Shown: positions 1 through 57,799 of the stretch, piece by piece
How the letters are laid out: every line of letters starts with the position of its first letter
Position numbering within the stretch: position 1 is the first letter of the stretch
NCBI RefSeq assembly: GCF_001194135.2
Contig: NC_068997.1
Span: 30,659,189 to 30,723,188, forward strand
Source of the DNA: Octopus bimaculoides
Lineage: Eukaryota
Direction of reading: 5' to 3'
Length of the DNA stretch: 64,000 nt
Notes under the pieces: generated by a model
The model's database searches: none
What the model was told of the DNA's origin: nothing
The model's input: only the letters and a program-made list of their open reading frames with translations
Position numbers and translations under genes: made by a program

Positions 1-484
1 AACCCTCATCATTGTAACTGACAGGATACCAATATATGTATTGCATATATTTATTTATTCCTAACCCATAGTGTAGAAATTATCCAGACATCAACCTTTT
101 ACTATTATACAAATCAGTTATGACTAGACACATGCCTGTTTGCAGTTTAACAAATAACAAACATTTGATAAAAAATATAATGAAGTCAGTATATTAAGTT
201 AATTGGAAAAGGAATAAGTCATCAATGCTTCAAGTATCAGCCCTTCTTTTTTAGGTAAAGAAGAGAGAAAATAAGGAAAATACTGTGTGTTATTTCAGGC
301 TATGATGGTAACAGACACAGGAAGTGGGTCGATGGTATATATGAATATTAGTAGAAGGCAGTGGAGAATTATTATTGTTGTTGTTGCTGTTGTTTTCCAC
401 AGCCATCCATGGACGAGGAGTTATACATCACACAAATAGTTTAACAAACCACAAGGTATGAGCCAGAGATTCATCATGCCAGTT

Positions 485-579
485 CTACCATGTCTCAGTT
501 AATCCTAATTCTTTTCTTTCACTTTTCAACTTCCTCCTCAACAACTGATTAATTGTCCCTATGCAGGTAGTTTCTCCCA
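485..579 (-). CDS. Candidate exon X6 (phase 1: GETTCIGTINQLL...W*)
   Basis: Acceptor tttttaatcccag| is conserved with copy 3 (50674), which reads GDNTYKGTVNQI*. No conserved donor. Confidence 0.25.
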
Positions 580-1111
580 CTGGGATTAAAAATTATTTCT
601 GTTTTTCTCCAACTCCTTCCCTCATTTTCCATCCCTCCTCATGCACATTACACACATATTCACTACACGAATCTTACATGAATTTTACACTTAACCTCTC
701 ACACATACATACTGTCTAGGGACACACACCTGACAACACATACCTGTCAACACACACCTTTTGCTTTTTATTCTTTCCTTATTTCTTTTTACTTGAGTTC
801 CACATGGACATCACCAACCCATCTCCACTACTAGAAATCACATATCTACAACCATTTCCTGTATCCATTATCATTATGACTATCTGAAATATGACATGAA
901 TAATCCCCTTCTTAATTAATTTTCTCTCTTCTCTCTCTCTTGAAAGAAATAGTTTTTGCTTCAATCTTTATCTTTTTGATTTCCACTTGGTTTAATTCAC
1001 TGACTTTATTTTATATTTCTCATATTTTTGTTTCTTTGAATTATTTTTGTTGAGGAACACAAAGACCAGGATTTCTCATAAATTGAATTTCATCCTTTAA
1101 TTGTTGCTTAC

Positions 1112-1145
1112 CCTCAACATCTTGGAAAGAAGACAAAACTGGAAT
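1112..1145 (-). CDS. Candidate micro-exon X5, 34 nt (may carry start codon, AAG ATG TTG AGG)
   Basis: ttctgtag| acceptor and |GTAAGC donor. Same length and sites as 52668-52701. Confidence 0.5.
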
Positions 1146-1688
1146 CTACAGAATTGTTAAGGAACAACAAACCTAGACATTTTGATTTTCACCTCAGACT
1201 GCCAAAACACATGGGTTTGATGAAAGCTTTTGAGACTTAATCGTATTTAATATTATATAAGAATTTACATCAATCTGTTCATTATATAGTAGCGAAAGAA
1301 ATTAGTATAAAAAAATCTAACTTCTTTCACCAATAAAAAAAAGACGTGTCTGATTTTTAAAATCAATGAAGCTGTAGTTGTGTTAAGACAGATAAGTGTA
1401 CAGAAATGATGGATTGTTATCTTAAATGCCAATCAAATTTTGCTTTTTTGAGCTCTCTGCTTTATTTTAATTCTTCTACTATTCAAAATACTATTCAAAA
1501 TACTATTCAAAATAATGGGATCAGGTTTGAAAGTTGAGCAATTTACTGTATTTCCAACATATGAAAAAATGTTTTAAGGAAATTAACAATCAACTGATCA
1601 TAAGAGTAATCTCCGTTTTTCGTTTCTTCTTTATTCTTTTTCTTTTTTACATTGTCAACATCCCCAAAAGTTTTTGTTTAGTATTTAC

Positions 1689-1702
1689 TGGGATAATCTC
1701 AA
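1689..1702 (-). CDS. Candidate exon X4 (stop-bearing terminal exon start or 14-nt micro-exon)
   Basis: tttgttcag|TTGAGATTATCCCA|GTAAAT. AG and GTAA are conserved in all three copies. Confidence 0.45.
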
Positions 1703-1800
1703 CTGAACAAAGTTCTTAAATTCACTATACACCTTAGATGAAATCATAATATATATATACTCGTATATTATCAAATATAAGGACATATTTCTTGCATTAC

Positions 1801-1832
1801 ATTTTTGCAAATGCCGTGTCTATTTCAGGTTT
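1801..1832 (-). CDS. Micro-exon X3, 32 nt (frame 0: KPEIDTAFAK)
   Basis: ttttactttcag| acceptor and |GTAATG donor. 32 nt in all three copies. Frame 0 is the only open frame in this copy. Confidence 0.65.
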
Positions 1833-6935: not shown

Positions 6936-6979
6936 AAGTCACTTTTATTTATGACATCGTTTGTGCGTTTGTACTGGTT

Positions 6980-7230
6980 TTAGCTTCAGGGTTTTAGGGT
7001 TCGGGTTAGGGTTCGGGGGTTAGGGTTCTGGTTTTAGAGTTAGGGTTCGGGTTTTAGGCTTAGGGAGAAGGTTTTAGAGTTAGGATTAGGGTTTTAGGCT
7101 TAGGGAGAAGGTTTTAGAGTTAGGATTAGGGTTGGGTTAGGATTAGGGTGTTAGGGTTAGAGTTTTAGGGTTAGGATTTTAGGGTTAGGGTTTTAGGGTT
7201 AGGGCTAGGATTTTAGGCTTAGAGTTACGG
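6980..7230 (+). repeat. Degenerate telomere-like (TTAGGG)n tract
   Basis: TTAGGG with variants TTCGGG, TTAGAG, TTAGGA, TTTTAGGG. Confidence 0.85.
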
Positions 7231-8160: not shown

Positions 8161-8401
8161 ATGTGTATGTGAAGTTCTTTTGTTAGTGTGCGAGAAGAGA
8201 CAGAGAGAGTAATGTTGCTGGTGTATTTGTATGTGAGAGAGAAAGAAAGAGAGAAAACTGAAATTTTTATATTCACTGTTTGTAGTGAGTGAATGTGTGA
8301 GTGATTGACAGAGTAAAAAAAGAGAGAGAGAGAGAGGTTATGTATATATGTATGAATGGCTTCANNNNNNNNNNATGTATATATGTATGAATGGCTTCAG
8401 T

Positions 8402-8664: not shown

Positions 8665-9480
8665 ACGTATGCATGTGCAAGGAAGGAATGAAGCCAGTAT
8701 GCTCCGCTGGATGTGTAATGTCAGTGTACATACACGACAGAGTGTAAGCGCCCTGAGAGAAAAGTTGGACTTAAGAAGCATCAGATGTGGTGTGCAAGAG
8801 AGACAACTGCGTTGGTATGGACATGTGTTGCGAATGGATGAGGACAGCTGTGTGAAAAAGTGTCATAACCTAGCAGTTGAGGGATCCTGTGAAAGAGGTA
8901 GACCCAAGAAGACCTAAGATGAGGTGGTAAAGCACGACCTTCGAACATTGGGCTTCACATTGGGCTGTGCTTGAGAAAACCCGGTAAGCCAAGTGAGACC
9001 ATAAGTCGTGGCCTATGATAGTGGTGTGCAACCAGCCCACTTATGTGTACCTTTCATTCATTGGAGTATAAACTTTCTTTGCGAAGACCTATTGAGGCAA
9101 GTGAAATCAAAATCACTGACGTGGCTGATGACTTCCACATGATTGGCACCCGGGCCAGTGGAATGTTAAAAACACCATCCAAGCGAGATCGTTTCCAGGG
9201 CCGCTGCCTGGCTCCTGTGCCGGTGGCACGTAAAAAGAACCATTCAAGTGTGATCTTTGCCAGCGTCGCCTTACTGGCACCTGTGCCGGTGGCACATGAA
9301 GAACAAGAGTCGAGCGTGGTCGTTGTCAGTGCTACCTGACTAGCCCTCGTGCCAGTGGAACATAAAAAGCACCCACTACACTCTCAGAGTGGTTGGTGTT
9401 AGGAAGGGCATCCAGCTGTAGAAACCTCCAGATCAGATTGGAGACTGGAAAGTGGACGTTAAATGACGATGATGATTATA
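8665..9480 (+). mobile_element. RTE LINE 3' end with hairpin-repeat 3'UTR and (GAT)n tail
   Basis: RNEASMLRWMCNV...RQLRWYGHVLRM...RGRPKKT; repeated GTGCCGGTGGCAC units; tail acgttaaatgacgatgatgat. Confidence 0.9.
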
Positions 9481-9619
9481 TGTATACANNNNNNNNNNNN
9501 NNNNNNNNNNNNNNNNNNNNNNNNNNNNNNNNNNNNNNNNNNNNNNNNNNNNNNNNNNNNNNNNNNNNNNNNNNNTATATATATATATTATATGTGGAAA
9601 TATATATATATATATATAT

Positions 9620-16690: not shown

Positions 16691-19600
16691 GCATTGGGTT
16701 CGTCAGTTTCCATTCAGTCTCCTTCGCTGATGTTTGTGCCGAAAGTGACTTTGGAGTCCAAGTCGGTGAAAGAGTCATGTGCAGAACTCGCACGGGATGA
16801 TCGGTGCGGGTCGAGGATGTTGAAGACGCTCCTTTCTTCTGTGTGTTGCCTCCTCATTTTCTTGTCTGTTCTGCTCGAAGGAGCTGGTTCCATTGCGGAT
16901 AACAGTCCTCCAGGCTGTCCTATCTATGGCAATATGTTCTTCCCATGAGGATGGCTGGATGTTAGCTTGAGCCAAGGTCCATTTGAGCTGGTCTTTAAAA
17001 CGGAATTTCGAACTTCCTCTGGGTCGTGTTCCGATTGGAAATTCTCCGTAGAGCATGATCCTTGAGAGACTAGAGGGCTCCATACGCTGGTAGTGTGGCG
17101 CGGTGAAGAGCCTCGTTGTCAGTAACGTAATCTTCCCATTGTATGTTGAGGATCTGTCGTAGCTTCGATTGCTGGAAGCATTCAAGGCGCTTAAAGTCAC
17201 GGCGGTACAAACGTCCAAGACTCACAAGTGTAGAGCAGAGTTGACAGGACAATGGCACGGAAAATAATGATCTTTGTCTGAATTGACAGCGCGTGATTGA
17301 AGAACACACGTTGGCTGAGTCTGCTGAAGGCTGAGTAGGCCACTCCAATCCGGTTGTCCACGTCCTTTTCACACGTGGGGATCCTTGAAGGGATACTTCC
17401 AATGTATGTGAAGTGTTCAATTTTTTCTAGGGGCTGGCCATTGATAGTAATGTTTGTAGCTGGACTGTTCTGACCTGGTGCAGGTTGGATCAGTGTCTTG
17501 GTCTTTAATGTGTTTATCTGCATCCCGAAGCAATCGTAAGCTGCGTTGTAAAGATTGACCGTCCTTTGTAGGCCATCTGAGATCCGGCTTGGAGCTGCAT
17601 TGTCGTCGGCATACTGCATTTCACGGACTGAGATGGTGAAGGTCCTCGTCTTTGCATGGAGACATGCACGGAGATTGAAGAGTCCGCCATCCATGTGATA
17701 GCGCATATTGATGGAAGGCGAGTCTAGTGGGATTTCGTTGAACATGGCGGCCATGTACACATGCCCTGACGCATTCTTGCTTAAGACCCCCAGTGATGGG
17801 AAACAGGTCTGTGATGGCATTTTGATGGCATACCCTACTCATCATGCTGTCATGGAGGGAGCAGACCAAGGCAATGAAGTACACTGGACATCCAAAGTGG
17901 GCAAGGACGACCTATATTGCAGGACGGGGTGCTTTGCCAAAGGCTTTTTATAGATCTCAGAAGATGAATATTGTAAGTTGTTGTTGTTGTTCCTGACACT
18001 TCTGGAATTGACGAGCACAAAAGATTATGTCGATTGTGCCTCGAGAAGGTCGAAAGCCACACTGAGGCTCAAGGAGAACGTCTTCCATGAGGATAAGGAG
18101 GCGATTGAGTAGGATACGGGCGAAGATCTTTCTTGCAATACTCAGGATGGAAATGCCCTAATAGTTGTTGCAATCCTCTCAGTCTCTCTTCTTGTAGATG
18201 GTGATGATTGTTGCATCGTGGAAGTTGTTTGGGGTGGGAACTTGCTTTCCCAGATCTTGAGGAAAAGGAGCATCAGATGATTTCTCATCTCAGGACCTCT
18301 GTGCGTGAGAAACTCAAACTGGATATTGCCTGCTCCTGGAGCTTTCCCCGGCAGGGACATCGAATGGCAGATGGGGAGCTGTGGGGTGTTCTGGAGGAGA
18401 TCATCAGGAGTGCGTGAGTAGTCGTTAAATAGGCAGTCGAAATGGGACTTCTAGCGATCAAGGATTCCCTGAGTGTCGGTTATCATAGAGCCAGTTGCAT
18501 TTTTCAGGTCACCCACTGATGACCTTGTGGGGCCGAAGATCTCCTTGGTTGCGGCATAAAAACTGCGCAAGTCTCGTTGGTCCACACAGTTTTGCATCTC
18601 CTCTGCCACCAGATGTTCTGAGCTTCTCGAATTCCTTGCTGGCATTCCGCTAATGTTTGCTGGTGGTTTCGTTTTTCCTCTGCTGTGGCATGGTTCTCGA
18701 GGGCAAAGCGCGTCCGGAGTTCGGCTTCGATAAGACGGGAGATGGTTTCATCATTCTTGTGAAACCAGTCTTGGTCTTTGTTCCGGGTAAAGCCAATCGT
18801 CACCTCGGCGGCAGCGGCCATGGCTCCACGAAGGCTTGTCCAGCGACCCTCAATGACGTTTGGCTCTGGGAGGTCCATCAGGTGTCTCTCAATGGATTCC
18901 CTGAAGTCTTGGGATACCTGTGAGTTCCGAAGCTTGGTGCAGTCGAAGCGATGTTTGCTGTGACCTGCTTTGGTTGGCAGCAGATCTTGAAGTCAAAGCA
19001 AGAAGTAAGAAGGCAGTGATCCATCCAGCAGCCATCTGCACCAGGCATGGAGTGGATGATACATACATCTCGTCTGTCCCTGGAACTTGTCAGAACGTAG
19101 TCGAGGATGTGCCAGTGTTTAGACCGTAGGTGTTTCTAGATTGTTTTTTTCCGGGAAGGGAGATAAAATAGGGTGTTGGTGATGACGAGTTCGTGCTCGG
19201 TGCAAAGGCCCAAGAATAGCTGGCCATTGACATTGTATTTCCCAATGCCGTGATGGCCAAGAATGCCATTCTACAGTCAATGGTCACTGCCGACTCTGTT
19301 ATTAAAGTCCCCCAACACGATGAGTTTGTCATGCGCAGGGATTGTCTGGATGGTGCGGTCCAGCAGGTTTTAGAACGAAGCCATGATATTATCTTCAGGT
19401 GTGAGGCATACAAAGAGGTCAGCGTAAGGAATCTGTCCGGAATGAGTGGGATCCAATCAGTATTCAGGCGCTCACTGACGGCAGTTGGGACGGGTCTATG
19501 TTGGTCCACGAGTTGCATTTTGATGGCAGGGCCAACACCATGGATGCGTGGCTCATTATGATTCTTCCCCTTCCAAAAGATGGTGCATTTGGAACCAGCT

Positions 19601-20636: not shown

Positions 20637-20639
20637 ACT

Positions 20640-29190: not shown

Positions 29191-29215
29191 TTAACAGCTA
29201 TTATTGTCCACTCTG

Positions 29216-39304: not shown

Positions 39305-39408
39305 CTAATCAAAGATATTTAGCTTAGTAGATACCATAACTGGAACCCTGCTATATATATATATGTACTTATATATTATCAGATTTAGGGATATGTTTCT
39401 TGAATTAC

Positions 39409-39440
39409 CTCTTTTCTTCCGAGCTGTCCATTTTGTCTTC
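39409..39440 (-). CDS. Micro-exon X3, copy 2 (EDKMDSSEEK; alternative frame KTKWTARKKR)
   Basis: ataatttcag| acceptor, 32 nt, |GTAATT donor. Confidence 0.65.
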
Positions 39441-40024: not shown

Positions 40025-40072
40025 TCAGAACACAATCATAATTCCATATAACAACATCCTGATAGAATATAG
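40025..40072 (-). CDS. Candidate terminal exon X2, copy 2 (LYSIRMLLYGIMIVF*)
   Basis: tttgtttcag| acceptor; TGA aligned with copy 1; AATAAA at 39702-39707. Confidence 0.35.
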   Translation of the reverse strand, partial: LYSIRMLLYGIMIVF

Positions 40073-40100
40073 CTGAAACAAATATTGAGCAGTCAAAGTC

Positions 40101-42050
40101 CTTGTATGTCTTTCTGTTTTTTTTTTGTTTTTTTTTTCTTGTCGATAATAAATGTAAACAAAATATGTAGTATATAGATGTAAAGATACATCGGAGGGAA
40201 CTGAACACTTTTGCATCAGTGCAACTTCACTGTGTTTCTTCTACTTAATTCATTACCACCGCTGGCGCCTTCACCCTAGCATTGTCGACAATGTTAGTGG
40301 ACGAGATGCTGTGCTCGTCACTGTCGGTGCTGGTGTTTCTGCTGTTTAATGTGTTGCTGCCACTGCTGCCCTCCACCGTTGCCACTGGTGATGGCAATGT
40401 TGTTGAAAGTGCTGCTGGTGCTATTAGTCTGATTGTTAGGGGTGGATACCACCACAGCCTCATAAGCAGGTCCCTCAGCCTTGAATATTCCCCACCACTA
40501 CTTGAACGATCATTGTGCTTCCTGAAAGAGCAACTGGCCTCTGCTTGCGTTTTATGCCAATATTCTTTTTATTTTGAGTGCGTAACTAAAGTAGATCTCT
40601 CTTAAACTAAAGACACAATATCTGTAGTCTTTGTCCCCCATTTCAAACACTACCTGCTGTTGGCGCGAGATTCCTCATTTGTTGATTAGGCCTGTAAAAA
40701 GTATCTGCTGACTGGAACCAGTTAAAGGGCAGAGATTCACTGTTTGACCTTTAGGTCAATAAGGTTTGCGAACTGGACCGGTCTAAGGCAGATTACTCAC
40801 TCCGTTCATATTATACATTTGTACACAAATCAACTAACTGTAACAGCCGATTAAGGCTGCAAAAATTATATTTTTACAGCCTTAATCGGCAAACGGAGAA
40901 TCTTATAGATGTCATCATGATGTCAGGAAAACGATGCTGTTTAATAATGGTTCGACCTGGGTCAAACAATCCAATTCCAAGGGTTCCGTAAGTGACGATG
41001 AGAGACTACAACAACACTGAAATATGTGACCGCATTGGGTTATACATTCTGGACACCTTAGGGAAGAAGTTTCCTTCAGTCCTCTTTGGTCTTTACAGAG
41101 ATGACAGCCTGACCATCTCTAGAAGAGCCAATGGGCACATCCTTGATAGATTTAAGAAATACATGAATAGTGTCCTAGGCTCCATTTAACTAGATATAAC
41201 AACTGAAAACAACCTCACCATCGTAACCTTCCTAGACGTCACACTAGATTGGGGCTCTGATTCATACAGGCCCTACTACAAAGCAAACACCATGTTGTCC
41301 TACATTGACAAAGCTTCCCACCATCCATCTGTAGTGTTCAGGAACTTAGTGACGGGTGTCAGCAAGAGAATCTCAAATCTGTCCTCGATAAAAGAAGCTT
41401 TCGACGCCGCGGATGCCTATTACAGCGAGGCCATCATGTCCAGTTGGTTTAAGGACCACATCTCCTATATATCGGGCCCTAGCACCCACAAAAGAAGTGC
41501 CACTGGGACATCATTTCGTTTGCTGCATCCTTCTTGCTCAACATTAAAACTTGTGTGGGAAGAACAAGCATATCCTGCAGATACACAGGTACAGACATTT
41601 GTTCGGTAGGTACAACCTAAAGGTCTCCTTTAGTTGCGCACCCGACAGGAAACGAATATTATCAAATAGGCATAAAACATGAGTAGAGGCTGGTATCTCT
41701 TGCAGGAAGTACAATGACTGCACAGTGAGGAACTAATGCGAGGCTGAGGGAGTTGTATATGAGGCTGTGGAAGCCTCCAGCCATAACAACCAGGGTAATA
41801 GCTGCAGTGGTTCATCTAATAGCATTTACAACAACGGTAAAGGTGAAGGCAGCAGTGGCAGCAACGCATTACATGGAAGAAACACCAGCACTATGGCCAG
41901 GATGATAACTACGCCAGACCAAGCAGCAACAGTGGAACTACCAGTCCCATGCTCAGAATAAACAGCGATGGAAGTCACAACACTAGGACTTGGGATGACT
42001 AATGCAACAGCAATAACAACAGCAACAGTAAACTCTCTCTGCAACAAAAA
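40101..42050. mobile_element. Naiad-type Penelope-like element with an inverted 3' arm (minus 40101-40875; plus RT to EN 40880-42050)
   Basis: NTEICDRIGLYILD...GLYRDDSL; YIDKASHHPSVVF...RISNLSS. 41600-41900 is the inverted homolog of 40240-40640. Confidence 0.75.
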
Positions 42051-43375: not shown

Positions 43376-43974
43376 CGAATAAAAATAAAATAAAATATAT
43401 ACTAAAAATAGATAAATATATACTTAAAATAAAGATATATATATACTGAAAATAAAATAAATATATATATAGGAAAAAAAGCAGCACATATCAAGCAGAG
43501 GTCAGCAATGCCTGTGCAGAATTTTAGGTCCAATAAGACTTGTACGACACCTCATAGACCCTCTTCATTCTATTAATATTATCCAGAGAAAAGCCGGAGC
43601 AAGATGTCTGGTGCCAATATGAGTCGCAGGCTCAGGGATGTGGGAGCACCATGATCTCTAATACAAACTAAAGATCCTCAAAATGTCCAATGCCATTCCT
43701 TGCATATCTGGTTTTATATCAGAGTGACCTTCTTCTAGAGACATGTTTGAACAGAAACTGAGGGGTGTCTCACTCCCAGTGGTCTTTCAGTATGCCAGAT
43801 ACCATCCCGGAATTTCTGCATACCAGTGTTATTGCTAGATAGCCGTTAAGCATACATTAGGATATGCAAGGTTCATTTTATACAATCCAGTGATGAAATT
43901 CTCAACAACCCATTTATCACAATTCATGAAAACAACAAAAATAAAATAAAAGTTAAAAGTTAAAAAAGACTTAC

Positions 43975-44014
43975 TCTTCTTAGTTGCTTAAAAAATTCAT
44001 TGAATTCAAATTCA
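43975..44014 (-). CDS. Micro-exon X1 paralog, 40 nt, phase 2 to 0 (EFEFNEFFKQLRR)
   Basis: attttgcag| acceptor and |GTAAGT donor. Only one open frame. Length differs from 28228-28255 by 12 nt. Confidence 0.7.
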
Positions 44015-44489
44015 CTGCAAAATATGTAAATGTGAAAATTCCAGATTAATAAAGTGAATCTGTGATGATGAGTCTAATATTTCGGTCTTTATCTTTTAAC
44101 TGAACTAAGCAATAGAAGAAAAAATGTGCTTTTGCATGAAATCAAGAAAATGGATGTGAAACTAAAATTTAAGGAATTGTGTGGTAGGTGAAAATGTATA
44201 TCCAATGAAAGTGATTGGGTGAGAGAAGAAAGGTGAAAGGTGAACAAGGAGTAAAGGAAACTTAGAAAATAAGACAGCAATTGGAAAGAAGCAATTTCTC
44301 AAAAAAAAAGACAAGTAGCAATATGCTGAAAATTGTAAGAGTGGCAGAAAAGATGGAGAAACCACTTGTGACTGAGGCAAGAAACAAATAAGAGGAACCA
44401 TACCTTAAAAATAAATTTATTCACAGATACACACACGCACCCACACACACACACGCCCCCCCCCCCNNNNNNNNNNTCCACACACAAGT

Positions 44490-47400
44490 ACACACAAAAC
44501 ATGGGAAGGTAACAGTGACGGAGTAGTTGGTGTAGGCATACACCTAGATGAGAAATGGGTGGATAAGATCATAGAGGTAGTTAGAGTATGCGATAGAGTA
44601 CTTATGCTCAGGCTAGTCTTGCAGAATAGCATAGCTACAATTATATCTGCCTACACCCAACAAGCGGGCCTACCAAATAAACAGAAGGACCATCATCATC
44701 ATCATCGTTTAACGTCCGCTTTCCATGCTGGCATGGGCTGGACGATTTGACTGAGGACTAGCGAACCCGATGGCTGCACCAGGCTCCAATCTGATCTGGC
44801 AAACTTTTTACAGCTGGATGCCCTTCCTAACGCCAACCCCTCTGAGAGTGTAGTGGGTGCTTTTATCTGCCACCGGCATGAAGGCCAGTCAGGCGGTACT
44901 GGCAACGGCCACACCCAAGTAGTGGTTTTTACGTGCCACCTGCACAGAAGCCAGTCCAGCAGCACTGGCAACGACCTCACTTGAATGTTTTTTCACGTGC
45001 CACCAGCACAAGTGCCAGTAAGGTGGTGCTGGTAATGATCACGGTCAAATGGTGCTTTTTATGTGCCACAGGCACGGAAGCCAGTCAGCTGCTCTGGCAA
45101 TGATCTCGTTTGGATGGTGCTCTTAGCACTCCACTGGCATGGGTGCCAGTCATCGAATTTGTGAATTTGATTCGATTTCGATTTCACTTTCTTCAACAGG
45201 TCTTCGCAAGCAGAGTTTAGTGTCCAATGAAGGAAAGGTACGCACAATTGGGCTGGTTTTTTATGATATTCTTCTGCAGGCTACCTCCAAGATGAGGGAC
45301 AATGATCTTATCTTCGTGACTGGGGATTTCAATGGGCATGTCAGACGGCAGCCCAGCATCTATCATCGCGTTCATGGGGGTCTTGGAATTGGTCCCCGAA
45401 GTGAAGAGAGAACAAGGCGACTGGAGTTCTGTGATGCAAATAACCTTTTGCTCTCCAACACCAACTTCAGGAAGCCAACCAGCCACCTGATAACCTATTA
45501 CTCAGGTGACTCTGCTAGCCAGATAGATTTCATTCTCACCAGACTGTGGGATGCATGACTGCTCTTAAATGCAAAGACTCTCCCTGGTGAAGAATGTAAC
45601 TCCAGCATAGACTAGTCATTAGCAACTTTAGACTCCAGGCCAGAATGATGCCAAGAAGCAGCCAATCTGGAAGCATCTTAATTAGGGACATCCTAATTGA
45701 AGAAGACCTGGGATGAGGCGGTGAAGCATGACCTTCAAACTTTAGGCCTCACTGAGGAAATGACCAGTGACTAGGACCTTTGGAAATATGCAGTAGGTGA
45801 GAAGACCCTGCCAGAAGTGTAGCCAGCTCACTAATCCGTATCTTTACTTCATTGGACACTAAAAACCCTGCTTTCGAAGACCTGTTGAGGCAAGTGAATT
45901 TCGAATTTGAAATTTGAAATCTGAAATCGAAATCGAACCGAATCTAATGACTGGCACCCATGCCAACCTCTCCTTCATTGGACACTAAACTCTGCTTGCG
46001 AAGACCTGTTGGGGCAAGTGAAATCGAAATTGAACCATACTCGTACCGGTGGCACGTAAAAGCACCCACTACACCCTCGGAGTGGTTGGCGTTAGGAAGG
46101 GCATCCAGCTGTAGAAACTCTGCCAGATCAGATTGGAGCCTGGTGCAGCCTTCTGGCTTGCCAGTCTTCAGTCAAATCGTCCAACCCATGCTAGCATGGA
46201 AAGCGGACGTTAAACGATGATGATGATGATGATGATGATGAGAGAGAGGAGCAGCTACAAACTTGAGACTTAGAGGGCAACTGGGAATTTATGCGAGACA
46301 GCTTGCTGAGTGCCACAGACCAAATCTGTGGCTCATACAAAGTCCCTTCCAGACTCAGGCTAATGTGGTGTTTGAACAATACCACAGACAGTGCCATTAG
46401 AGCAAAGAAACAGGCCTGGAAGAGTGAGGGTGGTAGGGAACTGTATCAGATAATCAGAAGGGAAACTAGGAGACAAGTATATCTAGCCTAGGGAGAAGTA
46501 GAAAAGAAGAAGTTTGCCAATGTTCAGCACTGTGAGGACCAACAAACTGAAGTATTTCGGATTGTAAAACAGTGTGTGAGAGAATATTGTGATTTCATAG
46601 GAGAGAAATGTGGCCACATAGATGATGGTACACTTACTGTTAATGAGTCTGCAAAGAAAGAGGACTGGAGATGTCATTATGAAAAACTGGAGAATGAATG
46701 GGAGGAGGAGAGTCTGCCAAATGTTGACCCAACTGAGGAACCAACTATCCGAATTGACAGTACCCTGTTAGATAAAGTAATTAAGGATATAAAGACAGAG
46801 AAAGCCGCGGGCCCATCAGGAATCTCCACTGAGGTGCTTAAAATATCTGGTGGTGTGGGTTATGGTCTAGTCACCTGTATTGCAAATCAGGTGGTTTATG
46901 AAGGAGTCATACCTAATGACTGGTGTAGCAGCACCATAGCCAACTGCTACAAAGGTAAAGGTGATGCCTTAGGTAGAAATAATTACAGTGGTATTAAATT
47001 GTTGGATCAGGTGATGAAAGTTATGGAGAGAGTCATAACCCAATTAATTAGGGAAAAAGTTAGTCTAGATGAGATGCAGTTTGGTTTTGTGCCCAGTAGA
47101 AGCACCATTGATCCTATATGTCTAGTAAGGCAACTTCAGAAGAAATACACAGCCAAAGATATACTTCTGTACTTAGCTTTTGTTGACTTATTGAAAGCCT
47201 TTGACAAGGTCTCCTGATCCCTTGTCTGGTGGTCAATGCGGAAACTTGGGATAGATGAGTGGTTGGTGAGAGCTATACAAGTTTTTTACAGAGATGCTAC
47301 AAGTAAGGTGAGGGTGGGCAATGAGTATAGCGAAGAATTTAGGGTACATGTAGTGGTTCACCAAGGGTCAGTCCCCCCTCTTGTTCATCATAGTCCTCCA

Positions 47401-48840
47401 GGCAATAACGGAGGAATTAAAGACAGGCTGCCCCTGGGAGCTCTTCTATGCTGATGACCTTGCTCTTATAGCTGAATTAGTACTTGAGCTAGAGAAGTTT
47501 CAGGTATGGAAACAAGGTCTAGAATCAAAGTGTAAGCTTTGGAAACACAAAAGGTGCAGTAACATCAAATGAAGTTTAAGAGAGAAACTAACTTTTGGAT
47601 GTGGAATGTGCACAGGCATAATAAATACTGAACATGAGTGGAAAACAGACTCCATGTACTGCCAGTGTGGCCAGCTAGATGTAGTAGATAGCTTCCAGTA
47701 TCTAGGCGACCCGGTTAGTAGTGGAGGTGGTTGTTCCGAGGGCCTAGTTGTGAGAATAAGACTAGGCTGGGCAAAGTTCAGAAAGCACTTACCCCAGCTA
47801 GCAATAAAGGGCCTCTCTCTCAGAGTGAAAGGAAGATTGCTTGATACCTCTGTGCGAACAGCTATGCTGCATGGCATTAAAACATGAGCTATGACAGCCA
47901 AGGACATGCGTGAGCTTGAGAGAAATGAAGTCAGTATGCTTCGCTGGATGTGCAATGTCAGTTTGCATGTTTGACAAAGTGTAAGCATCTTGAGAGAAAA
48001 GTTAGGCATAAGAGGCATTAGATGTGGTGTGCATGAGAGACGACTGTGCTGGTATGGTCATGTGATGCATGAGGACAGCTGTGTAAAGAAGTGCCGGTCT
48101 CTGTGGAGGGACCCTTGGTGAGGTAGACTTAGGAAGATATGGGATAAGGCAGTAAAGCATGATCTTCGAACTTTGAACCTCACAGAGGCAGTGTCTAGTG
48201 ATCGAGACCTTTGGCGATGTACTCTGTTTAAGAGGACTCATCAAGCCAAGTGCCCCCATTCTGGTGGTCTGGTGGCAAGTAAAAAAATTAAACTTTTGAA
48301 TGTTGGGCTCCATAGAGGCAAAGTAACTGAGTACTTTTCGAATGTTGGACATGACGGAAGTAAGGTGACTTAGTTCCTTTCGAGTGTTGGGCCTCATGGG
48401 GTGAGGTGGCTGTGCTCCTTTTGAACGGGCCTCACAGAGGCAAGGTGGCTGAGTTCCTCTCAAACGGGCCTCATGGAGGCGAGCTGGCTGAGTTCCTTTT
48501 GTGTGTTGGGTCTCATGGATGCAAAGTGGCTGAGCTCTTTTTGAGTGTTCGTCCTTACTGAGGCAATGACCAAGATCTTTGGCATTATGTGGTCCTTGAG
48601 AAAACCCATCAAGCCGAGTAATTTCACAGTCGAGGCAGATACCAGTGTCAAGCAAATGCCAGTGGCACGTAAAAGCACCCATTACACTCTCTGAGTGGTT
48701 GGCGTTAGTCAGGGCAACCAGCCATAGAAAACCATGCCAAATCAGACTGGAGTCTAGTGCAGCCTTCCAGCCCAGTCAAACCGTCCAACTCATGACAACA
48801 TGGACAACAGACGTTAAATGATGATGGCAATGATGATGAT
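44490..48840 (+). mobile_element. RTE LINE (EN-RT-3'UTR) with two nested RTE 3'-end insertions (44690-45260 minus; 45670-46240 plus)
   Basis: EN IISAYTQQAG...GDFNGHV...QIDFIL is split by the insertions; RT MQFGFVP, LAFVDLLKAFDKV, FYADDL; (GAT)n tails. Confidence 0.9.
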
Positions 48841-50633
48841 ACAACAGTACCAATAAAAATGGGTTATTATTAAATAAATATATCAAATCATTTCCATATA
48901 TATTTAGTGCTTCAGTGAAATTATGTCCGATGTGGTCTCAGCCATTTAGGATAAGAATCAAACTGACTAGATTCATTGTTACTTTGCAATTCATCAAGAA
49001 CCACAGAATCCATATAGCTATTATTACTTCTCTTTATTCATTCCTAACCTATAGTGTAGTAATTATTATTCAGCCATCAACCTTTTACTATGATGCAAAT
49101 CAGTTATGACAAGATACATACATGTTTACATTTTAACAAATAACAAACTAAAGTTTGACAAAAAAATATAACAAAGTCAGCATATTAAGTTGTTTGGAAA
49201 ATGAATAAGTTATCAAAGCTTCAAGTATAAGCCCTTCTTTTTTTTAGGAAAGAAGAGAGAAATTAAAGTAAAACTGTATATCATTTCATTGATGGCAACA
49301 GACACAAGTAGTGAGTAGATGGTTTATATGGGTTTTAATAGAAAAAAGTAGAGATTTATTGTAGTTTGTTTTTTGCACAGGTCATGCCTGATTGAGGAGT
49401 CATACAACACACAAATAGTTTAGCAAACAATAAGGAAATGAGACAGAGATTCACCTTCCCAGTTCTACCATGTCTCCATTTGAGATCGCAGCACACATGC
49501 ACACTTTGACATTCAATTACGAAATGTATGGTATGTAGCATAGCAGTCTGGAAATATTGCAATCAATGCTGGTGAGCAAACAGTTTTTCAAGCTGCCATG
49601 TCTATGTAGTGTACTAGAACATCACTTTCAGAATCTAATTTCACAAATAGAATCCGTTGGTCATCCATTCTCTCACACATGATTTCAATTTCTTCCTACA
49701 CAAACTTTCCTTACCTCATAAATACAAATAGAGAGATTCATATGCTGACAACATAAGCACTCACATCTACCAAGATTTTTTAAGATAGTGCAGCATAACT
49801 ATTTCAATCCTTCTTGAAGTTCTAAGGGACCTGGCCCCACAATGGTCTCATGAGAAATACTCTGTCCCTTTCTCATTCAGGAAGTCATTCTTAGATAGAG
49901 TGAAGTACATGAAGTGGAAAATTTTAAGCAGGATCAAGCGGTCAACATTGGAAAGCTGTAAGTCATTGAGTTGAGTCACTAAGACATGTAAAGTTGAGAC
50001 AAGTGTAAATATAATTGGTCAACATGCCGGTGGAGATTACAGATGTCTCCAATACCACACTTCATCCTGCAGCCAAATTCTTTATGAACAATGATTGTGT
50101 AGTGACGGCTAATACCAGTCGCCATTTTGGGAAGTTCGTCCACGCATGCGCAGGGACATGTCTTCCGGAAGGCATGCAGGAAGTCCCTCATGCGCATGCT
50201 TGGTCATCCTATATCAAAGCATTCCCGCCTTTTCTTGACCTCTTCGCACTGGAGCTTCGAAGACACAGGACCACTAAGAGCCGCTCTGTAACTCTGCCTT
50301 TGAGTCAACGCAAACTTCTTCGGAGGCTGAAGAATGACTTAATCAACTAGCGTCGACACTGTCTTCACACCAACCATAAAGGATGACCTGGCAATTCCGT
50401 TACCTGAGATGTAGGCTGAGCACTTCATAATAAATATTTGTTATGTTGTTATTCAATTTATCCAGCATGTTCATTTTTATTGAAGAGAATTGATTTGTAC
50501 GGGATAGGGTTACCCAATGATGGTGGCCCTATAACCTACAATTGATTTTGCTTTTGGATGCATCCATCTACAGCCAGGATTATACATTGATTAATTTTCC
50601 ACTAATTCTTTACTTTCTTTTTTCAACTCCCCT

Positions 50634-50674
50634 CTATATCTGATTAACTGTGCCTTTATAGGTGTTATCTCCCA
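50634..50674 (-). CDS. Candidate exon X6, copy 3 (GDNTYKGTVNQI*)
   Basis: ttttaaaatcccag| acceptor; aligns with 485-579. Confidence 0.25.
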
Positions 50675-50789
50675 CTGGGATTTTAAAAAATCTATTTCTA
50701 TTTTTTTCCAACTCCTTCCCTCATTTCCCAACCACCACATATGCACGTACATACACATTCACACTACTTGAATCTTATAACAATGTTGA

Positions 50790-52560
50790 TCGGTTATTGT
50801 GAGCAATGACCAAGGACATCACATGGGATGGACGGATACATTACAGAGTCTCTGGCCATGAGTGGCGAGTCGTATTGTTGCTCAGAAGGCTCTGCAAAAA
50901 AATAGCTCTACACTATTCACAGTTCATGTCTTTATTGTGCCCAGGTATGTTAACTTATCAACAACCTTCAGCGTTTCTCCTTCGACAGTGATAGTTGGTT
51001 CCACATATGGCTTCCATGGGACAGGTTAGTGCATTAAGTCTGTCTTCTGAATACTGATTGTGAGGCCAATGTTGTCTGATGTAGTGGAAAAGCAGTTCAT
51101 GCTGTGCTGTATCTGGGCCTCTGTGGTGGCGTAGAGTGTGCAGTCATTTACAAAAGAAAGGCACACACTAAATCCTCTTTTCCCTTCATCTTGGCCAGTA
51201 GTCTCCGCAGGTTGAAGTGTCAGTCATCAATCTGATCTTGACACTGATTTCATTTCATCCATGTTGTGGAAAGTATCCAACAACATGGCCAAGACCATCA
51301 TGCTGAACAGGGAAGGTGTGAGTACACAGCATTGCTTGACTCCATTAATAACTGGAAATGCATCAGAAGAATCTCTATCATCCAGTTCTCGAATGAGAAC
51401 GCCATCATGAAACTGACGTAACATGCTGATGAATTTGTCTGGGCAGCTCAACTTTCTCATGATCTCCCATAGTCCCTCGTAACTGATGGTGTCAAAGGCC
51501 TTGTTTAAGTCCACAAATGTTGTGTATATATCCTTGTTTTGCTTCTGATATTTCTCCAGAAGTTGGCGTGCTGTAAAAACCATATCAACTGTCTCTTGGC
51601 CATCTTTCAATCCGCATTGACTGTCTCACAGATGACCAGCTTCCGTATAATGAGTGGGGTTAAGGATCGAAGGCAAGGAGAGAAATTCCTCGATAGTTGT
51701 GACAGGAACACTTACTTACCTTTCTCTTCTAGAGAGTGACAATAGATATATACTTAACACTCTGGGAAAATAATTTCTTGTTGCCACATGGTCTGAGAGA
51801 GCTTGGCGAGCTTCTATGACAAGACTGGTACACCTAGTATATATATTTCAGCTTGGATGGAGTCAGAGGATGGTGACTTTGCCATTAGAGAGAAATTTAA
51901 TTACTTCCTGGACCTCTGCTTTTGTTGGAGGTTCTGCCAGAAAAGTGTTGATGACAACTTGGGGCATATGCAGGCAATGGCTTCGGCTTTATAAAGGAAG
52001 GCCCTTTCAGGACGTTGTTGAAGCATGCTGCTCACCTATTCAGGTAGAATAATTTTGTCAGGAACAAGCAGTGTTGATGTTTTGGAGGACTGTGGCCCAA
52101 AGATGGCTTATAGGACATCGTAGAAGCACTTAGATTTGTTGCTGTCAGTGTATCTCTATATCTCATCTGCTTTGTTGCTGAGCCAGAAATCCTTTTCCCT
52201 CTGAGCTTTATGTGCACTTTGCTTTTGTGATATTCTAAGCTGATTTCTAGGAGGTCAATGTTTTGTCTTGTTGACAGACTCTGTACTCTTCATGCTTCTC
52301 ACCAAGTAACTTCTGAATTTCCTCATCATTGCTGTCGGACCAGTTTTAGTGTTTATACAGGTTCTGGCTTTGATGAATGATCCAGGGCTACATAGCACAT
52401 CCCCGAACGCCAACCAGTCATCTTCTATCCACTCTGTACCAACATCAAGTTGGCTCATCTTGCTGTCCAGGCTGTCTATTGCTGAGATTCTGTTGCACAT
52501 TGTGCTGTTCCAATTTGCTGACACTTAGCCGCCTACTTGCCTGCTTTGCTTGTGGTCGAT
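50790..52560 (-). mobile_element. Decayed RTE (BovB-like) RT
   Basis: DMVFTARQLLEK, FVDLNKAFDTI, NGVKQCCVLTPSLF. Confidence 0.85.
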
Positions 52561-52667
52561 GCCTGGACAGGATGTGCATGTCTCCTACCCTTAAAATTAT
52601 TTTTGCTGAGGTGAACGAAGACCAGAATTTCTTATATACTGGATTTCATGTTTTAATTACTGCTTAC

Positions 52668-52701
52668 CCTCAGCATCTTTGGAAGGAGAAGATACTGGAA
52701 T
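52668..52701 (-). CDS. Candidate micro-exon X5, copy 3 (AAG ATG CTG AGG|GTAAGC)
   Basis: AG acceptor, 34 nt, GTAAGC donor, as in 1112-1145. Confidence 0.5.
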
Positions 52702-52922
52702 CTATTAATTTATTAAGTAACAATAAAACTAGACAGCCTAAAATCATAAGTTTGATGTAACCTTTTGAGACCTATTCATAATTAAAATAATATAAGAAAA
52801 TGCAATAAAGTGAATATTACAATTTAGGTATGCTGTAGTGGCTATCATTCATCACCCATGATGAAGTCAGTTTAGTTTCAACACAAAACCTTAGATCAAA
52901 TCTCTTGCCTGAAATGTAGTAA

Positions 52923-52954
<32 letters not shown>

Positions 52955-52956
52955 GC

Positions 52957-53001
<45 letters not shown>

Positions 53002-53135
53002 TTTCTCACTGAGTTCACAAACTAGCTTCAGCTTCTGTTTAATTTGCATAAATCTGTTCCTTATATAATAAAGAAATCAATATCACAAAATCTAAATTTT
53101 TTCACCTGTCAAAAAGTTTATTATTGTTAGAATTA

Positions 53136-55524
53136 CACCGGTCAACAAAATATTTGTCCCAAGAGAAAGAATACCTACATCTAATATATTTTTTTTATGC
53201 AGAATTCAAAAATAATGTCAAATTAAATGTATCATTCAGTTTCTCTGTTGCACGATATTCTGCTCAGTTCCTGTTATGTGAGCTAAATTTCTGTTAAGCT
53301 GCTGAAATATGAAGCTAGCAGTTTCAGAAATACTCCTAATTTAAATGTGTATGAATAGAATTAAGCTAATGAAATCCTAAATCTAGCTATCTGAGTTAAT
53401 GAGTCACCGAAGCTTGGCAACACCGAGTCGATGAGTTACTGATGCTTTGTCAGTACTGTGCTTGAAGTGTAGGCGTGCAGTTATGTACTAAGTTCACATA
53501 TTCCATTCAACTTCATATTTCCAAGAAACTGTATAAACATCACAAACAACTTTTGTTATATTTGTGATGATTTAACATTCAAGTCATAAAGATAGCATTT
53601 CACACCACTGATTAAAAAGCACTATGAACATTATTTCGACTGCAAAGTGGATGATCAGGATAAAAGCTGGGCCTCTTCATGTGTTTTATGTAACCTCTGT
53701 CAGGCTTTTCACTGTATAGGTCAAAAGTTTACGCCATATGCCTTTTGCCACCCCTATGATTTGGAGAGAGTCCAAAGATCACATTTCAGATTGCTACTTC
53801 TGCATGACGAATATACAAGGTGTAACATCAAAATCCAAGCATACTATAAAATATCCTCATTTACAATCTGCTATGAGACAAGTACTTCACAGTCAACACT
53901 TACCTGCACCTGATCCTCCAAAACTAAGGACACTTAGTGATGATGATTCAAGTGATGAAGATATGGAAAAGAAACAGAAGACTTTGAGCCTAACCATTCT
54001 TCAAGTGAACCACATTTGTTGAATCAGGGAGATCTGAATGATTTTGTGTGGGATTTAAATTCGCCGAAAAACGCCTTGGTTTCAGGTAAAATGCTGAAAT
54101 CTTCTCAAGAGACTATAGTTACTTTTTAATGTACTCAATATTGTAATTTTGCAAATTTTTTCTCACTTCAGGATGGTATGGTGTTTTGTAATGATGTATA
54201 TTGTTAGGGAGGAACTTAACCACAAATATAGCACGAATGAGTGGCATTTGCCTCCACAAAGTAAGCTTGAAAGCAGTTTTACTCCACAATGGAAATAAGT
54301 TTCCTCCTGTTCCTCTGCCGATGCAGCTAGCATGAAAGAAACATATAAGAGTATGAAACTTCGGTTGCAAAAAATTAAGTATGAAGAACATAAGTGGAAT
54401 ATTTGTGGTGACCTAAAGGTTGTGGCACTTTTATTTGGAATGCAGTTGGGTTACATCAAGTTTTGTCACTTTCTTTGTGAGTGGGACAGTCAAGATATGA
54501 AAAATCATTATGAAAAAAGAATGTGCGGCCAAAATGATCTCTAACTCCTGGACAGTAGAATGTCATTAATCTTCCCCTTGTTGATTCTGAGAAACTTTAT
54601 CTGTCTTCTTTGCATATTAAGCCAGGGTTGATGAAGAATTTTATCAAAGTTATGGATAGAACTGGTAAGGAATCCACGTATTTTGAAAACTAAATTTCCA
54701 AGAGTAAGTGATGGAAAAAATCAAGGAAAGTTATTTTTGTTGAGCCACAGACTAGGGAGCTGTTGAGAAACCAAAAATTTGATGAAGAGCTTAATGATGT
54801 TGAAAAAGCTGCATGACTGTCATTTAAGAGAGTTTTGGGGGAATCACAGAGCAGAGAACTATTCTGATATTGTGAAAGAGCTAGTGACATCGTACAAGGT
54901 CTTGAGATGCAATATGAGCCTAAAAAGCCACATCTTGAACTCTCACTTGGAATTTTTTCCTGCAAACCTTGGGCTATCAGTGATGAGCATGGTGAGATGC
55001 TTCACCAGGACATTCTGAACACGGAAACCCGGTTCCAAGGAAAGTGAAGCTCTTCTATGTTTGCTGATTATTGTTGGTCACTAAAAAAGGATGTTCCAGA
55101 AGCTAAATACAGTCAAAAATCATACACTTCTACTTTTTAAAGATGTTTTCTTGTAATATCAGCCTGATTTTTGAATTCATGAAATACAATTTTTCAACAA
55201 TTTACATATACTATCACGGAAAAACTATGGCTTATAGAAAAAGTTTGAAAACACACTTGAATTCTATGGATAAAATGTTATTAATTTCATCTACTTTTGT
55301 TTGGGGGACCAAATTTTTCATTAATTCTGTTGACCAATTATAATTGTCATCCTTATTTCTGCATTAATATGGCACATTTATTGTATAATTTAATTACTTT
55401 GTTACGTAAAAACCATAGCTGAGAGAATGATTCTAAAACATTCGAAATCTGCATTAAAAGTACTATAAACTTCATTTTCTTTAGTTCGTGGGACAGTAAA
55501 AAATTTGAATTTTGTTGATCAGTG
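53136..55524 (+). mobile_element. Chapaev3-like (CMC) DNA transposon, decayed transposase
   Basis: TIRs CACCGGTCAACAAAAT / ATTTTGTTGATCAGTG; flanks tta/ttg; DQDKSWA, MIWRESKDHISDCYFC, WNICGDLKVVALL, CNMSLKSH, SDEHGEMLHQDI. The family name is from recall. Confidence 0.8.
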
Positions 55525-55857
55525 TTGTTAATGCAATAACTGCCTTAAGAGACATGAGCATAGAGAAATAATGGATTGTTATACCAAATATATATATTTT
55601 GTGCCTTCTGTTGATTTCCGTCCTTCTACTATTCATAAATAATACCAATGTTCTAATGGAGTAAGATTTGGAAGTGTAGCAATTTAGTATACATATCCAG
55701 CTTAGTATGAGAAAAAAATTTACAAGAAAATCAACAATCAACTTTTATTAACAATTATCTCCCTTGCTCATTGCTTTGAAATTATAGACATTTCCAGGAG
55801 AGGTTTTTGCCTAGTAATAACTGAGATAATCTCAACTGATCAGAAATCTCTAATTAC

Positions 55858-55871
55858 TGGGATAATCTCAG
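55858..55871 (-). CDS. Candidate exon X4, copy 3, with a degenerate duplicate at 55822-55835
   Basis: gatcag|CTGAGATTATCCCA|GTAATT. Confidence 0.4.
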
Positions 55872-55985
55872 CTGATCCCCTATACACCATAACTGGAACC
55901 CTGCTATAAATATATGTATATTAATACTTATATATTAACAAATACTTATATATTAACAGATTTAGGGATATATTTCTTGCATTAC

Positions 55986-56017
55986 CTCTCTTCATCCGAG
56001 TTGTCCATTTCGTCTTC
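55986..56017 (-). CDS. Micro-exon X3, copy 3 (EDEMDNSDEE; alternative frame KTKWTTRMKR)
   Basis: ttttaatttcag| acceptor, 32 nt, |GTAATG donor. Confidence 0.65.
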
Positions 56018-56589
56018 CTGAAATTAAAACATGATATTGAACGTTAGAAGGAAAGACAAAAATCCAACTTCTTACAACAAATTATAGAGAAGACATGACT
56101 GAATATAAATAATACAACATGTGAGAGTAGTGACAATTATCTGATGGAGATTATGTAATCCATATTATCACAGTTACACATGATTTCTTTTTTTCTTATT
56201 TATAGTTTTAGCATGGTACACTGGCTTTGACATAGGATTTGAATGGATGAAATCTTCTAACTAGAAACCGTGTCAAATGATGATATGAGAATTTTTATTT
56301 AATCAGTTTAAACATTTGTGTAAAATTCAAAGTCATATGAGACTTAGAAATGTATACAATACCCCACTACTAGCTTTAAAAATTACTAAAAAGAAGACAC
56401 CAAAGAGTGTAAATAGAGAACAATTAAAAAGTCAGGTTATTGAATAGTCATGTAATTTTCATGTATTTGACGATTTTTTATTTGATGGACCTTCATAGAA
56501 AATTGCACCTACAGCCCTGATTAACATTTTAAAATCAATATTCCAAACAACCTCTCTCTCAGACTGCTAATAACTGCAACTGGAACAAA

Positions 56590-56667
56590 TCATTCCATAA
56601 GGCATCTGAATAATTCCCAGAAGAACACAATCATAATTCCATATAAGATATTCCTGATAGAATATAG
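56590..56667 (-). CDS. Candidate terminal exon X2, copy 3 (LYSIRNILYGIMIVFFWELFRCLME*)
   Basis: tttgtttcag| acceptor; TGG in place of the TGA seen in the other copies; AATAAA at 56294-56299. Confidence 0.35.
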   Translation of the reverse strand, partial: LYSIRNILYGIMIVFFWELFRCLME

Positions 56668-57799
56668 CTGAAACAAATATTGAGCAGTCAAAGTCCTTGT
56701 ATGTTAACTTTGCACTGTATCTGATTCATTTCATACATTGACAGGTCTGGTTGATATATTAGAGATAAACATAGATATACATTTCACTTTAATTTACATA
56801 AAATTTAGATCCTGATACATATGAGTAATTTAGTCATATTCCAATGAAAAGCACAAAGACACATTCACTAAACCTATCAAGAAAATATTCCACCCACACA
56901 ATAAACAAATTAGAGAATGTATCTGAAAGACTGATGGCTACTAAAGCAACATGGCCTCACCATCTCTGAGGACCTCTCTTAACAAACAGACATATATCTT
57001 GCATAGAAGGAATAATACTGAATAAACTGGTATTCTTCTTCTTCAGAACCAAACAATATTTCATCCCCATCAACTCTACAGATCCTCTATAAAGCACAGA
57101 TGAAACCTTCAAATATATAGTTCTCACATACTTGAGATAGTACTGTTGCTACACAAAGTGACATCCTGGAACATATGAAAAGAAAAGTCCCATGACTGAT
57201 TAATTAGAAGGCATTTGCTTAATGTCTAATCCAGAGTCATGCAGACTCTTCTCTCTCTCTGTGCATTTTTGCCATTATTGCTGTGGCTTTATAATAACCA
57301 TTACAAAGCATAATAACACAGAAAATAATAATCACCGAATTTCTACGATGTGGTGGAGGGCTACACTAAAGGAGTTATGAAAAGTGTCATACTCTAGCAT
57401 ACCCATGTCGTCAAAAATGCAGGTAATTTTATTAATGATACAAAATGGCACATCAACACAGTAGGAGAAAACATTGATAAATATCAACTATCTAATAAAT
57501 GTATGTACACACACACAATTGAAGCATTTGAAGAATAATATACGGTTGTAAAATTTGGTTGAAAATAACTTCCACATGATACGTGTATATGTGTGTGTGC
57601 GCATAGGTATGTTATAAGGTATTTCTCCAAATGTTTACTGTTTTCCTTACGGGTTTTGAAAAATTGGTTAATTTCAGCGGTTAGCATATAAATTCTGTTA
57701 TAATAGCTTTATTCCAAATAGAAAATCCTTAAACCGTATATGTTTCCTGGAGTATTAATATAAACAACAACAACAATAATAATAGTGATGATGATGATG

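Follow-up and report, generated by a model that had tools for sequence, protein, structure and literature searches.

Does the host DNA that lies between transposons at one locus of the Octopus bimaculoides genome carry genes built of exons too short for an open reading frame (ORF) track? The question is raised by a 64-kb stretch of contig NC_068997.1 (RefSeq assembly GCF_001194135.2, positions 30,659,189 to 30,723,188), hereafter called the window, whose own numbering is used throughout. From the letters alone, an initial annotation had proposed here a minus-strand, tandemly triplicated family of micro-exon genes buried in transposable elements (TEs). What is established is that the units are duplicated and interrupted by TEs, that AG/GT boundaries are conserved, that one open frame is shared, and that two candidate exons, X1 and X3, are strongly diverged in their interiors. 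In our judgement the odds are even that the segments are genuine spliced micro-exons, belonging to a transcription unit that is lineage-restricted and tandemly duplicated; the protein reading originally given to them is doubtful, and a transcript that is non-coding or built differently is, given real exons, an unlikely further option. That the candidate exons are transcribed, spliced and translated, or have a secreted or propeptide function, is inferred from the sequence. The sequence observation holds, and to read it as micro-exon genes is plausible, though unproven and incomplete.

Self-BLAST of the window confirmed the tandem triplication. Three paralogous units, A, B and C, are colinear and in the same orientation (all matches +/+), with identities of 65-80% for A against B and C and of 81-91% for B against C, and a mean column identity of 77% in the three-way alignment. 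The main block of unit A (21-2383; minus strand, as for all blocks and exons below) is paralogous to B 38969-40098 and to C 49003-56693, the latter in five colinear same-strand blocks, and A-B and B-C are colinear too. The main block of unit B extends over 38830-40109 and that of unit C over 55527-56704, the two being 91% identical over B 39366-40109. Downstream blocks of unit C lie at 49003-49476, 50573-50787, 52590-52819 and 52927-53133 and are split by TE DNA, including a long interspersed nuclear element (LINE) reverse transcriptase at 51029-51625. Farther upstream, the block of unit A that contains X1 (28116-28314) matches B 43859-44073, in a region of unit B that spans 43859-44296, and a CT-rich block upstream of X1 in A (29611-29813) matches a CT-rich and (GT)n block in B (44080-44456). 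Because the units diverge by 9-35% and differ by many indels, the triplication as a haplotig or other assembly artefact was ruled out.

The burial of these units in TEs was likewise confirmed, since remnants of reverse transcriptase, endonuclease, RNase H and integrase sit between their blocks. Indeed, decayed retroelement ORFs are dispersed across the whole window, with endonuclease and reverse-transcriptase fragments at 6.5-6.9, 12.8-13.5, 35.7-36.3, 46.6-47.2 and 51.0-51.6 kb and RNase H and integrase fragments at 15.5-16.8 kb. In unit A, a 1.3-kb insertion (28315-29610), holding a repeat also found at 58745-58930 and in Octopus vulgaris, parts the CT-rich block from X1. The CT-rich block conserved upstream of X1 in A and B is preceded by a (GT)n microsatellite.

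Within the units, the X1, X3, X4 and X5 segments listed in the initial annotation were all recovered at their given positions, each bounded by minus-strand AG...GT. X1 occurs in unit A as 28 nt (28255-28228) and in unit B as 40 nt (44014-43975), in both cases preceded by TTTTGCAG and followed by GTAAGT. X3 measures 32 nt in each unit (A, 1832-1801; B, 39440-39409; C, 56017-55986), and TTTCAG before it and GTAAT after it are found in 3/3 copies, the donor of the A copy reading GTAATG. X4, with an in-frame TGA, reads TTGAGATTATCCCA in A (1702-1689), where an AATAAA follows 53 nt downstream, and CTGAGATTATCCCA in B (39304-39291), where the AATAAA follows after 6 nt. Three copies of X4 had been described; there are four, because X4 together with its acceptor is duplicated in tandem in unit C only, with a 36-nt period (55871-55858 and 55835-55822, spanning 55822-55871). 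X5, 34 nt long and AG/GT-bounded, lies at 1145-1112 in A, where it ends ATG TTG AGG|GTAAGC, and at 52701-52668 in C, where it ends ATG CTG AGG|GTAAGC, so that AGG|GTAAGC is common to both copies. The intron between X3 and X4 would measure 98-114 nt in all three units, and that between X1 and X3 4.5 kb in B and 26 kb, filled with TEs, in A.

Of the order X5, X1, X3, X4 assigned to one gene in the earlier reading, the X1-X3-X4 part is supported by the one shared open frame through X1 and X3 that ends in X4. X5, on the other hand, lies downstream of X4 in its own unit (by about 0.55 kb in A), a position that leaves it no role but that of first exon in the gene that follows; X5 of unit A would hence start a further, fourth gene beyond the window start. 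A fifth and weaker segment, X2', was found between X1 and X3, at 1997-1967 in A (31 nt, donor GTACTC), 39567-39543 in B and 56140-56116 in C (25 nt each, donor GTATTA in C). With AG/GT conserved around a diverged core, X2' may be a non-coding or alternatively used exon, or a product of chance; as a member of the chain it was rejected for its weak donors and for a phase incompatible with X1-X3.

How far such boundaries exceed chance was assessed by an unguided scan of the paralog alignments, run without reference to the earlier segment list. To count as a candidate, a segment needed AG and GT conserved in each of the two copies, 10 or more pyrimidines among the 15 upstream positions and a donor reading GTR; in addition, its two lengths had to differ by a multiple of 3, and one open frame had to be common to both. 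On the minus strand, the scan returned four candidates, namely X5, X1, X3 and the weaker X2' (1997-1967 / 39567-39543), against none on the plus strand, given by the reverse complement, and a mean of 0.16 in column shuffles. Conserved GTAAG was found twice on the minus strand and in neither the reverse complement nor the reversed alignments. The claim of conserved splice-like AG/GT boundaries, mostly on the minus strand, was thus borne out, and the excess over controls is real but modest. Around X1, TTTTGCAG and GTAAGTCTTTTT are identical in both copies and directly flank a core of only 33% identity, and one copy is longer than the other by 12 nt, which is divisible by 3. Between A and B, identity falls from 0.78 in the flanks to 0.33 inside X1, and from 0.77 to 0.50 inside X3; taken together, the cores of X1, X2' and X3 show 0.33-0.50 identity beside flanks of 0.77-0.78. 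The edges of the low-identity island at X3 fall exactly on AG| and |GT, and X3 ranks 8th lowest in identity among the 660 ungapped windows of its own alignment.

The reading frame adds to this picture. Only one frame is open through X1 and X3 in both A and B: both copies of X1 are open in frame 2 only (PDDKSWLET in A and EFEFNEFFKQLRR in B), and X3 of unit A in frame 1 only (KPEIDTAFAK), which is the compatible phase. The corresponding X3 peptides are EDKMDSSEEK in B and EDEMDNSDEE in C, and in every unit the X1-X3 chain ends at the TGA in X4. The C-terminal peptides of the initial annotation (EFEFNEFFKQLRREDKMDSSEEKS, PDDKSWLETKPEIDTAFAKI and EDEMDNSDEES) were thereby reproduced, and the frame they come from is the only one that stays open in A as well as in B. 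They are charged and contain no cysteine, and the predicted B peptide carries an RR pair followed by an acidic tail.

Several results weigh against real exons, and many of them are what would be expected if the units were an old tandem segmental duplication of non-genic or deep-intronic DNA, decaying neutrally and without the proposed transcription, in which AG...GT pairs and a shared frame arise by chance between AT-rich paralogs. In the scan, the reversed and the complemented alignments each gave two candidates, so that the controls hold 0-2 comparable candidates per orientation, and conserved GTAAG was found twice in the complemented control as well. An island-first analysis counted 10-12 low-identity islands per 1.2 kb, most of them due to indels. 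When all alignments are pooled, the divergence of X1 is matched by 9.7% of 41-column windows and that of X3 by 26% of 32-column windows, and the pooled P for hypervariability alone is ~0.03. Hypervariability is hence suggestive and not decisive, and its use as strong evidence was downgraded after this analysis. Part of the core of X1 in unit B is a TGAATT-type slippage repeat. By a rough estimate from base composition, two AT-rich copies would share an open frame of this length, 20-24 codons, by accident with a probability of ~0.17. No X5 was found in unit B, where the expected place holds a microsatellite, a TE and the assembly gap 38391-38400 (the gap lying about 0.2-0.3 kb past that place, inside the TE that occupies it), and no X1 of unit C was found in 56.7-64 kb of the window. 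An AATAAA follows X4 within 6-100 nt in each unit, at positions that are not aligned.

The start of the predicted protein raises further difficulties of the same kind. X5 ends in phase 0 whereas X1 needs phase 2, and a direct X5-to-X1 splice, which was rejected, reads MLR and then a stop in B. No complete ATG-to-stop chain was found, and in the paralogous blocks of A and C neither relaxed filters nor inspection of the alignments yielded a convincing second exon or an exon for a hydrophobic signal. The full protein of the initial annotation is thus not supported: no chain from ATG to stop, no exon 2 and no signal peptide was recovered. X5 encodes only MLR before its donor, and the missing signal exon could lie in unaligned or off-window DNA; over the 9-nt ATG-to-donor segment (3 residues), X5 is 89% identical between A and C. 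Finally, none of 5.8 billion proteins, a collection that includes the O. vulgaris annotation, shares three 5-mers with the three predicted C-termini searched as one concatenated query. This null is weak as evidence, because small genes are often left unannotated. Two other openings were tried and discarded. An 85-codon hydrophobic ORF seen by eye upstream of X1 in unit B is not conserved, its ATG being ATA in A, and reflects the CT-rich composition there. The other was a long ORF running through repeats of an X1+X3+X4+X5 cassette, whose length of 108 or 120 nt is divisible by 3; stops interrupt all three of its frames.

Neutral decay would leave some features to coincidence, however. All four candidates are colinear on one strand, with none on the opposite strand; in both copies of X1 a perfect TTTTGCAG and GTAAGT stand directly beside the 33%-identical core; the edges of the X3 island coincide exactly with splice-like dinucleotides; and the frames of X1 and X3 are mutually compatible. 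We regard neutral decay as a substantial possibility, on the lesser side of even.

A different objection is that the unit is itself a medium-copy interspersed repeat, such as a non-autonomous element, rather than host DNA of a single locus. What suggests it is that the homology of all three units stops at one common point (2383, 40109 and 56704). The boundary in unit B abuts the poly-A tail (40110-40127) of a retroposon-like element of about 1 kb (40128-41185), and a relative of this element, 77-80% identical to it, lies at 59206-60234, 2.5 kb from the same boundary in C. A single insertion may have preceded the duplication that gave B and C, or there may have been two independent ones. Inclusion of the pair in the unit was rejected: the minus-strand poly-A makes a retroposon more likely, as does an identity of 77-80% next to unit DNA that is 91% identical.

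The units show none of the marks of a mobile element that were looked for. They contain no ORF longer than 87 codons, the 10 longest ORFs of the units have no significant Pfam match (none below E = 0.03), and neither terminal inverted repeats, a long terminal repeat (LTR) nor a poly(A) tail of their own was found, which led us to reject the unit as a TE. The copies are colinear across several blocks in one orientation, and self-BLAST detected no reverse-orientation or partial copies elsewhere in the window. In 51.6 kb of O. vulgaris DNA, from two random loci (L001 and L002), the unit sequence has no match whereas the TEs of the window have 30, and several window repeats match there at 77-88%. 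Of these 30 matches, 14, at 80-88%, come from one short interspersed nuclear element (SINE)-like element of about 135 nt at 26200-26339, which is hence a very high-copy octopod repeat. The absence of the unit from this sample argues against a high-copy repeat and leaves room for a medium copy number. Altogether, an interspersed repeat appears very improbable. A pattern scan for the X1 flanks and a conserved 24-mer of the unit in metagenome contigs, a collection without eukaryotic genomes, gave no matches, as expected.

If the exons are real, the question becomes what they encode. A stricter form of the micro-exon interpretation holds that the protein of the initial annotation is right in full, the units encoding a family of small secreted peptides of schistosome micro-exon gene or conotoxin type, with positive selection acting on the micro-exons. 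It draws on the one shared open frame and the 12-nt length difference of X1, on exon cores more diverged than their flanks, and on the RR pair and acidic tail of B, which could be interpreted as those of a propeptide. Besides, all differences between B and C in X3 (4/4 by codon comparison) are non-synonymous in the proposed frame, yet this has a P of only ~0.3, as ~75% of random changes are expected to be non-synonymous. Against secreted peptides stand the lack of a signal peptide and of an ATG-to-stop chain, the lack of relatives in the protein search, peptides without cysteines, and exons that are only three or four in number and not multiples of three in length, contrary to what defines the micro-exon genes (MEGs) of schistosomes. 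We consider secreted peptides of this kind rather unlikely.

The comparison with MEGs deserves some detail, as it was part of the original proposal. Schistosome MEGs consist of 10-20 micro-exons of 6-81 bp, mostly multiples of three, with an N-terminal signal peptide and introns of 0.1-5 kb (PMC10526429). The octopus candidates resemble them in very short exons with much longer introns between, in tandem paralogs, in high variability and in having no homologs outside the lineage; of the defining features, only the long introns are found here. The differences are numerous: there are only three or four candidate micro-exons (X1, X3, X4 and X5, plus the weak X2'), and the paralogous blocks yielded no additional conserved AG/GT segment; the exon lengths of 28/40, 32, 14 and 34 nt are in no case divisible by three, so that skipping one would break the frame; no signal peptide was found; and the phylum is different, with no sequence similarity.

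Conopeptide genes offer a second point of comparison. They have about three exons of conventional size, with a conserved signal sequence and a mature region built on a cysteine framework, and in genes of the conopeptide and snake-toxin type the exons evolve faster than the introns. As in such venom and defence peptide genes, conserved splice sites and intron flanks surround diverged cores in X1 and X3 (in alignments where islands of comparable divergence are common), the units are duplicated in tandem, and in one copy an acidic tail comes after a dibasic site; unlike in them, the exons measure 14-40 nt, the predicted peptides lack cysteine and no signal exon was identified. The parallel with MEGs and conotoxin genes drawn in the initial annotation thus holds in part for the architecture and fails for the defining features (exon lengths, exon number, cysteines). 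The resemblance is architectural only, and membership in either group is not supported.

The same exons could also be real and non-coding, belonging to a spliced long non-coding RNA (lncRNA), perhaps one long transcript that reuses X1-X3-X4-X5 cassettes, or, as a variant, serving as untranslated-region or alternative 3' cassettes of a larger gene that extends beyond the 64 kb. X4 and X5, each with both an acceptor and a donor, might be internal exons; no frame of X1+X3+X4+X5 stays open; the cassette would be 108 or 120 nt long; and the absent start and exon 2 would need no explaining. On the other side, cores that diverge faster than their flanks are not predicted for an unconstrained lncRNA, and X1 and X3 would have compatible frames only by coincidence. 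Host genes of small nucleolar RNAs (snoRNAs), of the GAS5/UHG type, do have exons less conserved than their introns, and the short, poorly conserved exons and better conserved flanking intron sequence found here recall them. Unlike in such hosts, the introns consist of kilobases of TE, and no intron-hosted snoRNA or other Rfam family was detected; with no Rfam match and no tRNA anywhere in the window, the idea of a host gene for snoRNAs or other non-coding RNAs was discarded. The lncRNA and the larger-gene variant, taken jointly, seem unlikely.

Returning to the interpretation as spliced micro-exons, the following course of events may be proposed. A low-copy octopod DNA segment of a few kilobases would have formed a local tandem array, later swollen by insertions of LINE, LTR, SINE and DNA elements; three of its units are visible, and X5 of unit A would imply a fourth beyond the window start. 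On its minus strand the segment would carry a transcription unit that is short, spliced and restricted to the lineage, each gene straddling a unit boundary. A gene would begin at the conserved 5' exon X5 (ATG YTG AGG|GTAAGC), about 0.55 kb past X4 of the previous copy, and continue through a long TE-filled intron to X1, X3, an intron of about 100 nt and X4. Only gene B would be complete in the window, over about 13.4 kb (X5 at 52701-52668, X1 at 44014-43975, X3 at 39440-39409 and X4 at 39304-39291). If translated, the last 20-24 codons would run through X1 and X3 and stop at the TGA in X4. The boldest version is an octopod orphan-gene cluster whose peptides come largely from asymmetric micro-exons of 14-40 nt with cores outpacing their introns, that is, an independent molluscan invention of MEG-like or toxin-like design; we give it little probability.

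In its favourable form, this reading would add a lineage-restricted, rapidly diversifying cluster of small genes in a cephalopod; literature searches turned up no micro-exon gene family described from cephalopods. Standard gene finders and ORF tracks are blind to such genes because the exons are 14-40 nt long and the introns are tens of kilobases of TEs. If true, the cluster would join the taxon-specific peptide families with venom, defence or neuropeptide-like products, and it would illustrate how much small coding or non-coding content repeat-rich genomes may hide. If the exons are not real, the locus would be an ordinary TE-riddled segmental duplication and a caution on calling micro-exons from AG/GT pairs in AT-rich DNA. 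The locus indeed resembles the TE-bloated segmental duplications of cephalopods in its colinear same-strand copies of 65-91% identity, broken by independent LINE, LTR and SINE insertions and by gaps in repeats; unlike what neutral duplication leads one to expect, strand-specific and phase-compatible splice-like boundaries coincide here with islands of divergence.

The assembly itself bears on these conclusions at a few points. The window has ~38% G+C and eight N runs, all within TEs or introns, the nearest being more than 450 nt from any proposed exon. The link from X1 to X3 in unit A (28228>1832) spans four gaps and thus depends on correct scaffolding. Two 10-N gaps are flanked by exact duplicates, of 25 nt around 8365-8374 (8340-8364 / 8375-8399) and of 228 nt around 38391-38400 (38163-38390 / 38401-38628); they look like unmerged overlapping contig ends, with sequence that is continuous but redundant, a matter of assembly and not of biology. 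The gaps 31272-31464 and 36690-37338 break copies of one TE family, and their flanks are colinear with a gap-free copy. Copies of this kind at 20638-21497, 31465-32262 and 35818-36689 are 78-80% identical, each ending at most ~130 nt from an assembly gap; the assembler evidently broke at this family. At the gaps 9489-9575, 21628-22588, 23962-24459 and 44467-44476, the flanks are microsatellite or unique sequence.

Among the other contents of the window, the minus-strand ORF at 17197-17820 encodes a LINE reverse transcriptase that shares 70-76% identity with O. vulgaris hypothetical proteins. Large stretches are unclassified, for example 2.4-4.7, 22.6-28.1, 41.2-43.8 and 56.7-57.8 kb, so that the three units need not be all of the host DNA left after removal of TEs, as the initial annotation has it. 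Exact-product look-ups for two window ORFs returned no record. A 2.4-kb insertion of unit C contains ORF fragments at 53596-55044 on the plus strand (...DHISDCYFC... and ...SHLEFFPANLG...) that resemble transposase-like proteins, a tentative class as Pfam gave nothing significant. A 226-codon ATG ORF at 48002-48682 (minus strand) overlaps a tandem repeat of 39-42 nt at 48293-48549; it has no Pfam match and is probably TE-associated. Tandem arrays with 64-66-nt repeats (GTGCTTTTTACGTGCCACCGGCA...) are found at 9140-9295 and 44857-45121, in opposite orientations, within a larger repeated element. A degenerate (TTAGGG)n array with periods of 14-28 nt, interstitial and telomere-like, lies at 6976-7227 amid TE-rich DNA, and an exact 64-nt tandem duplication is present within a TE copy at 30526-30655.

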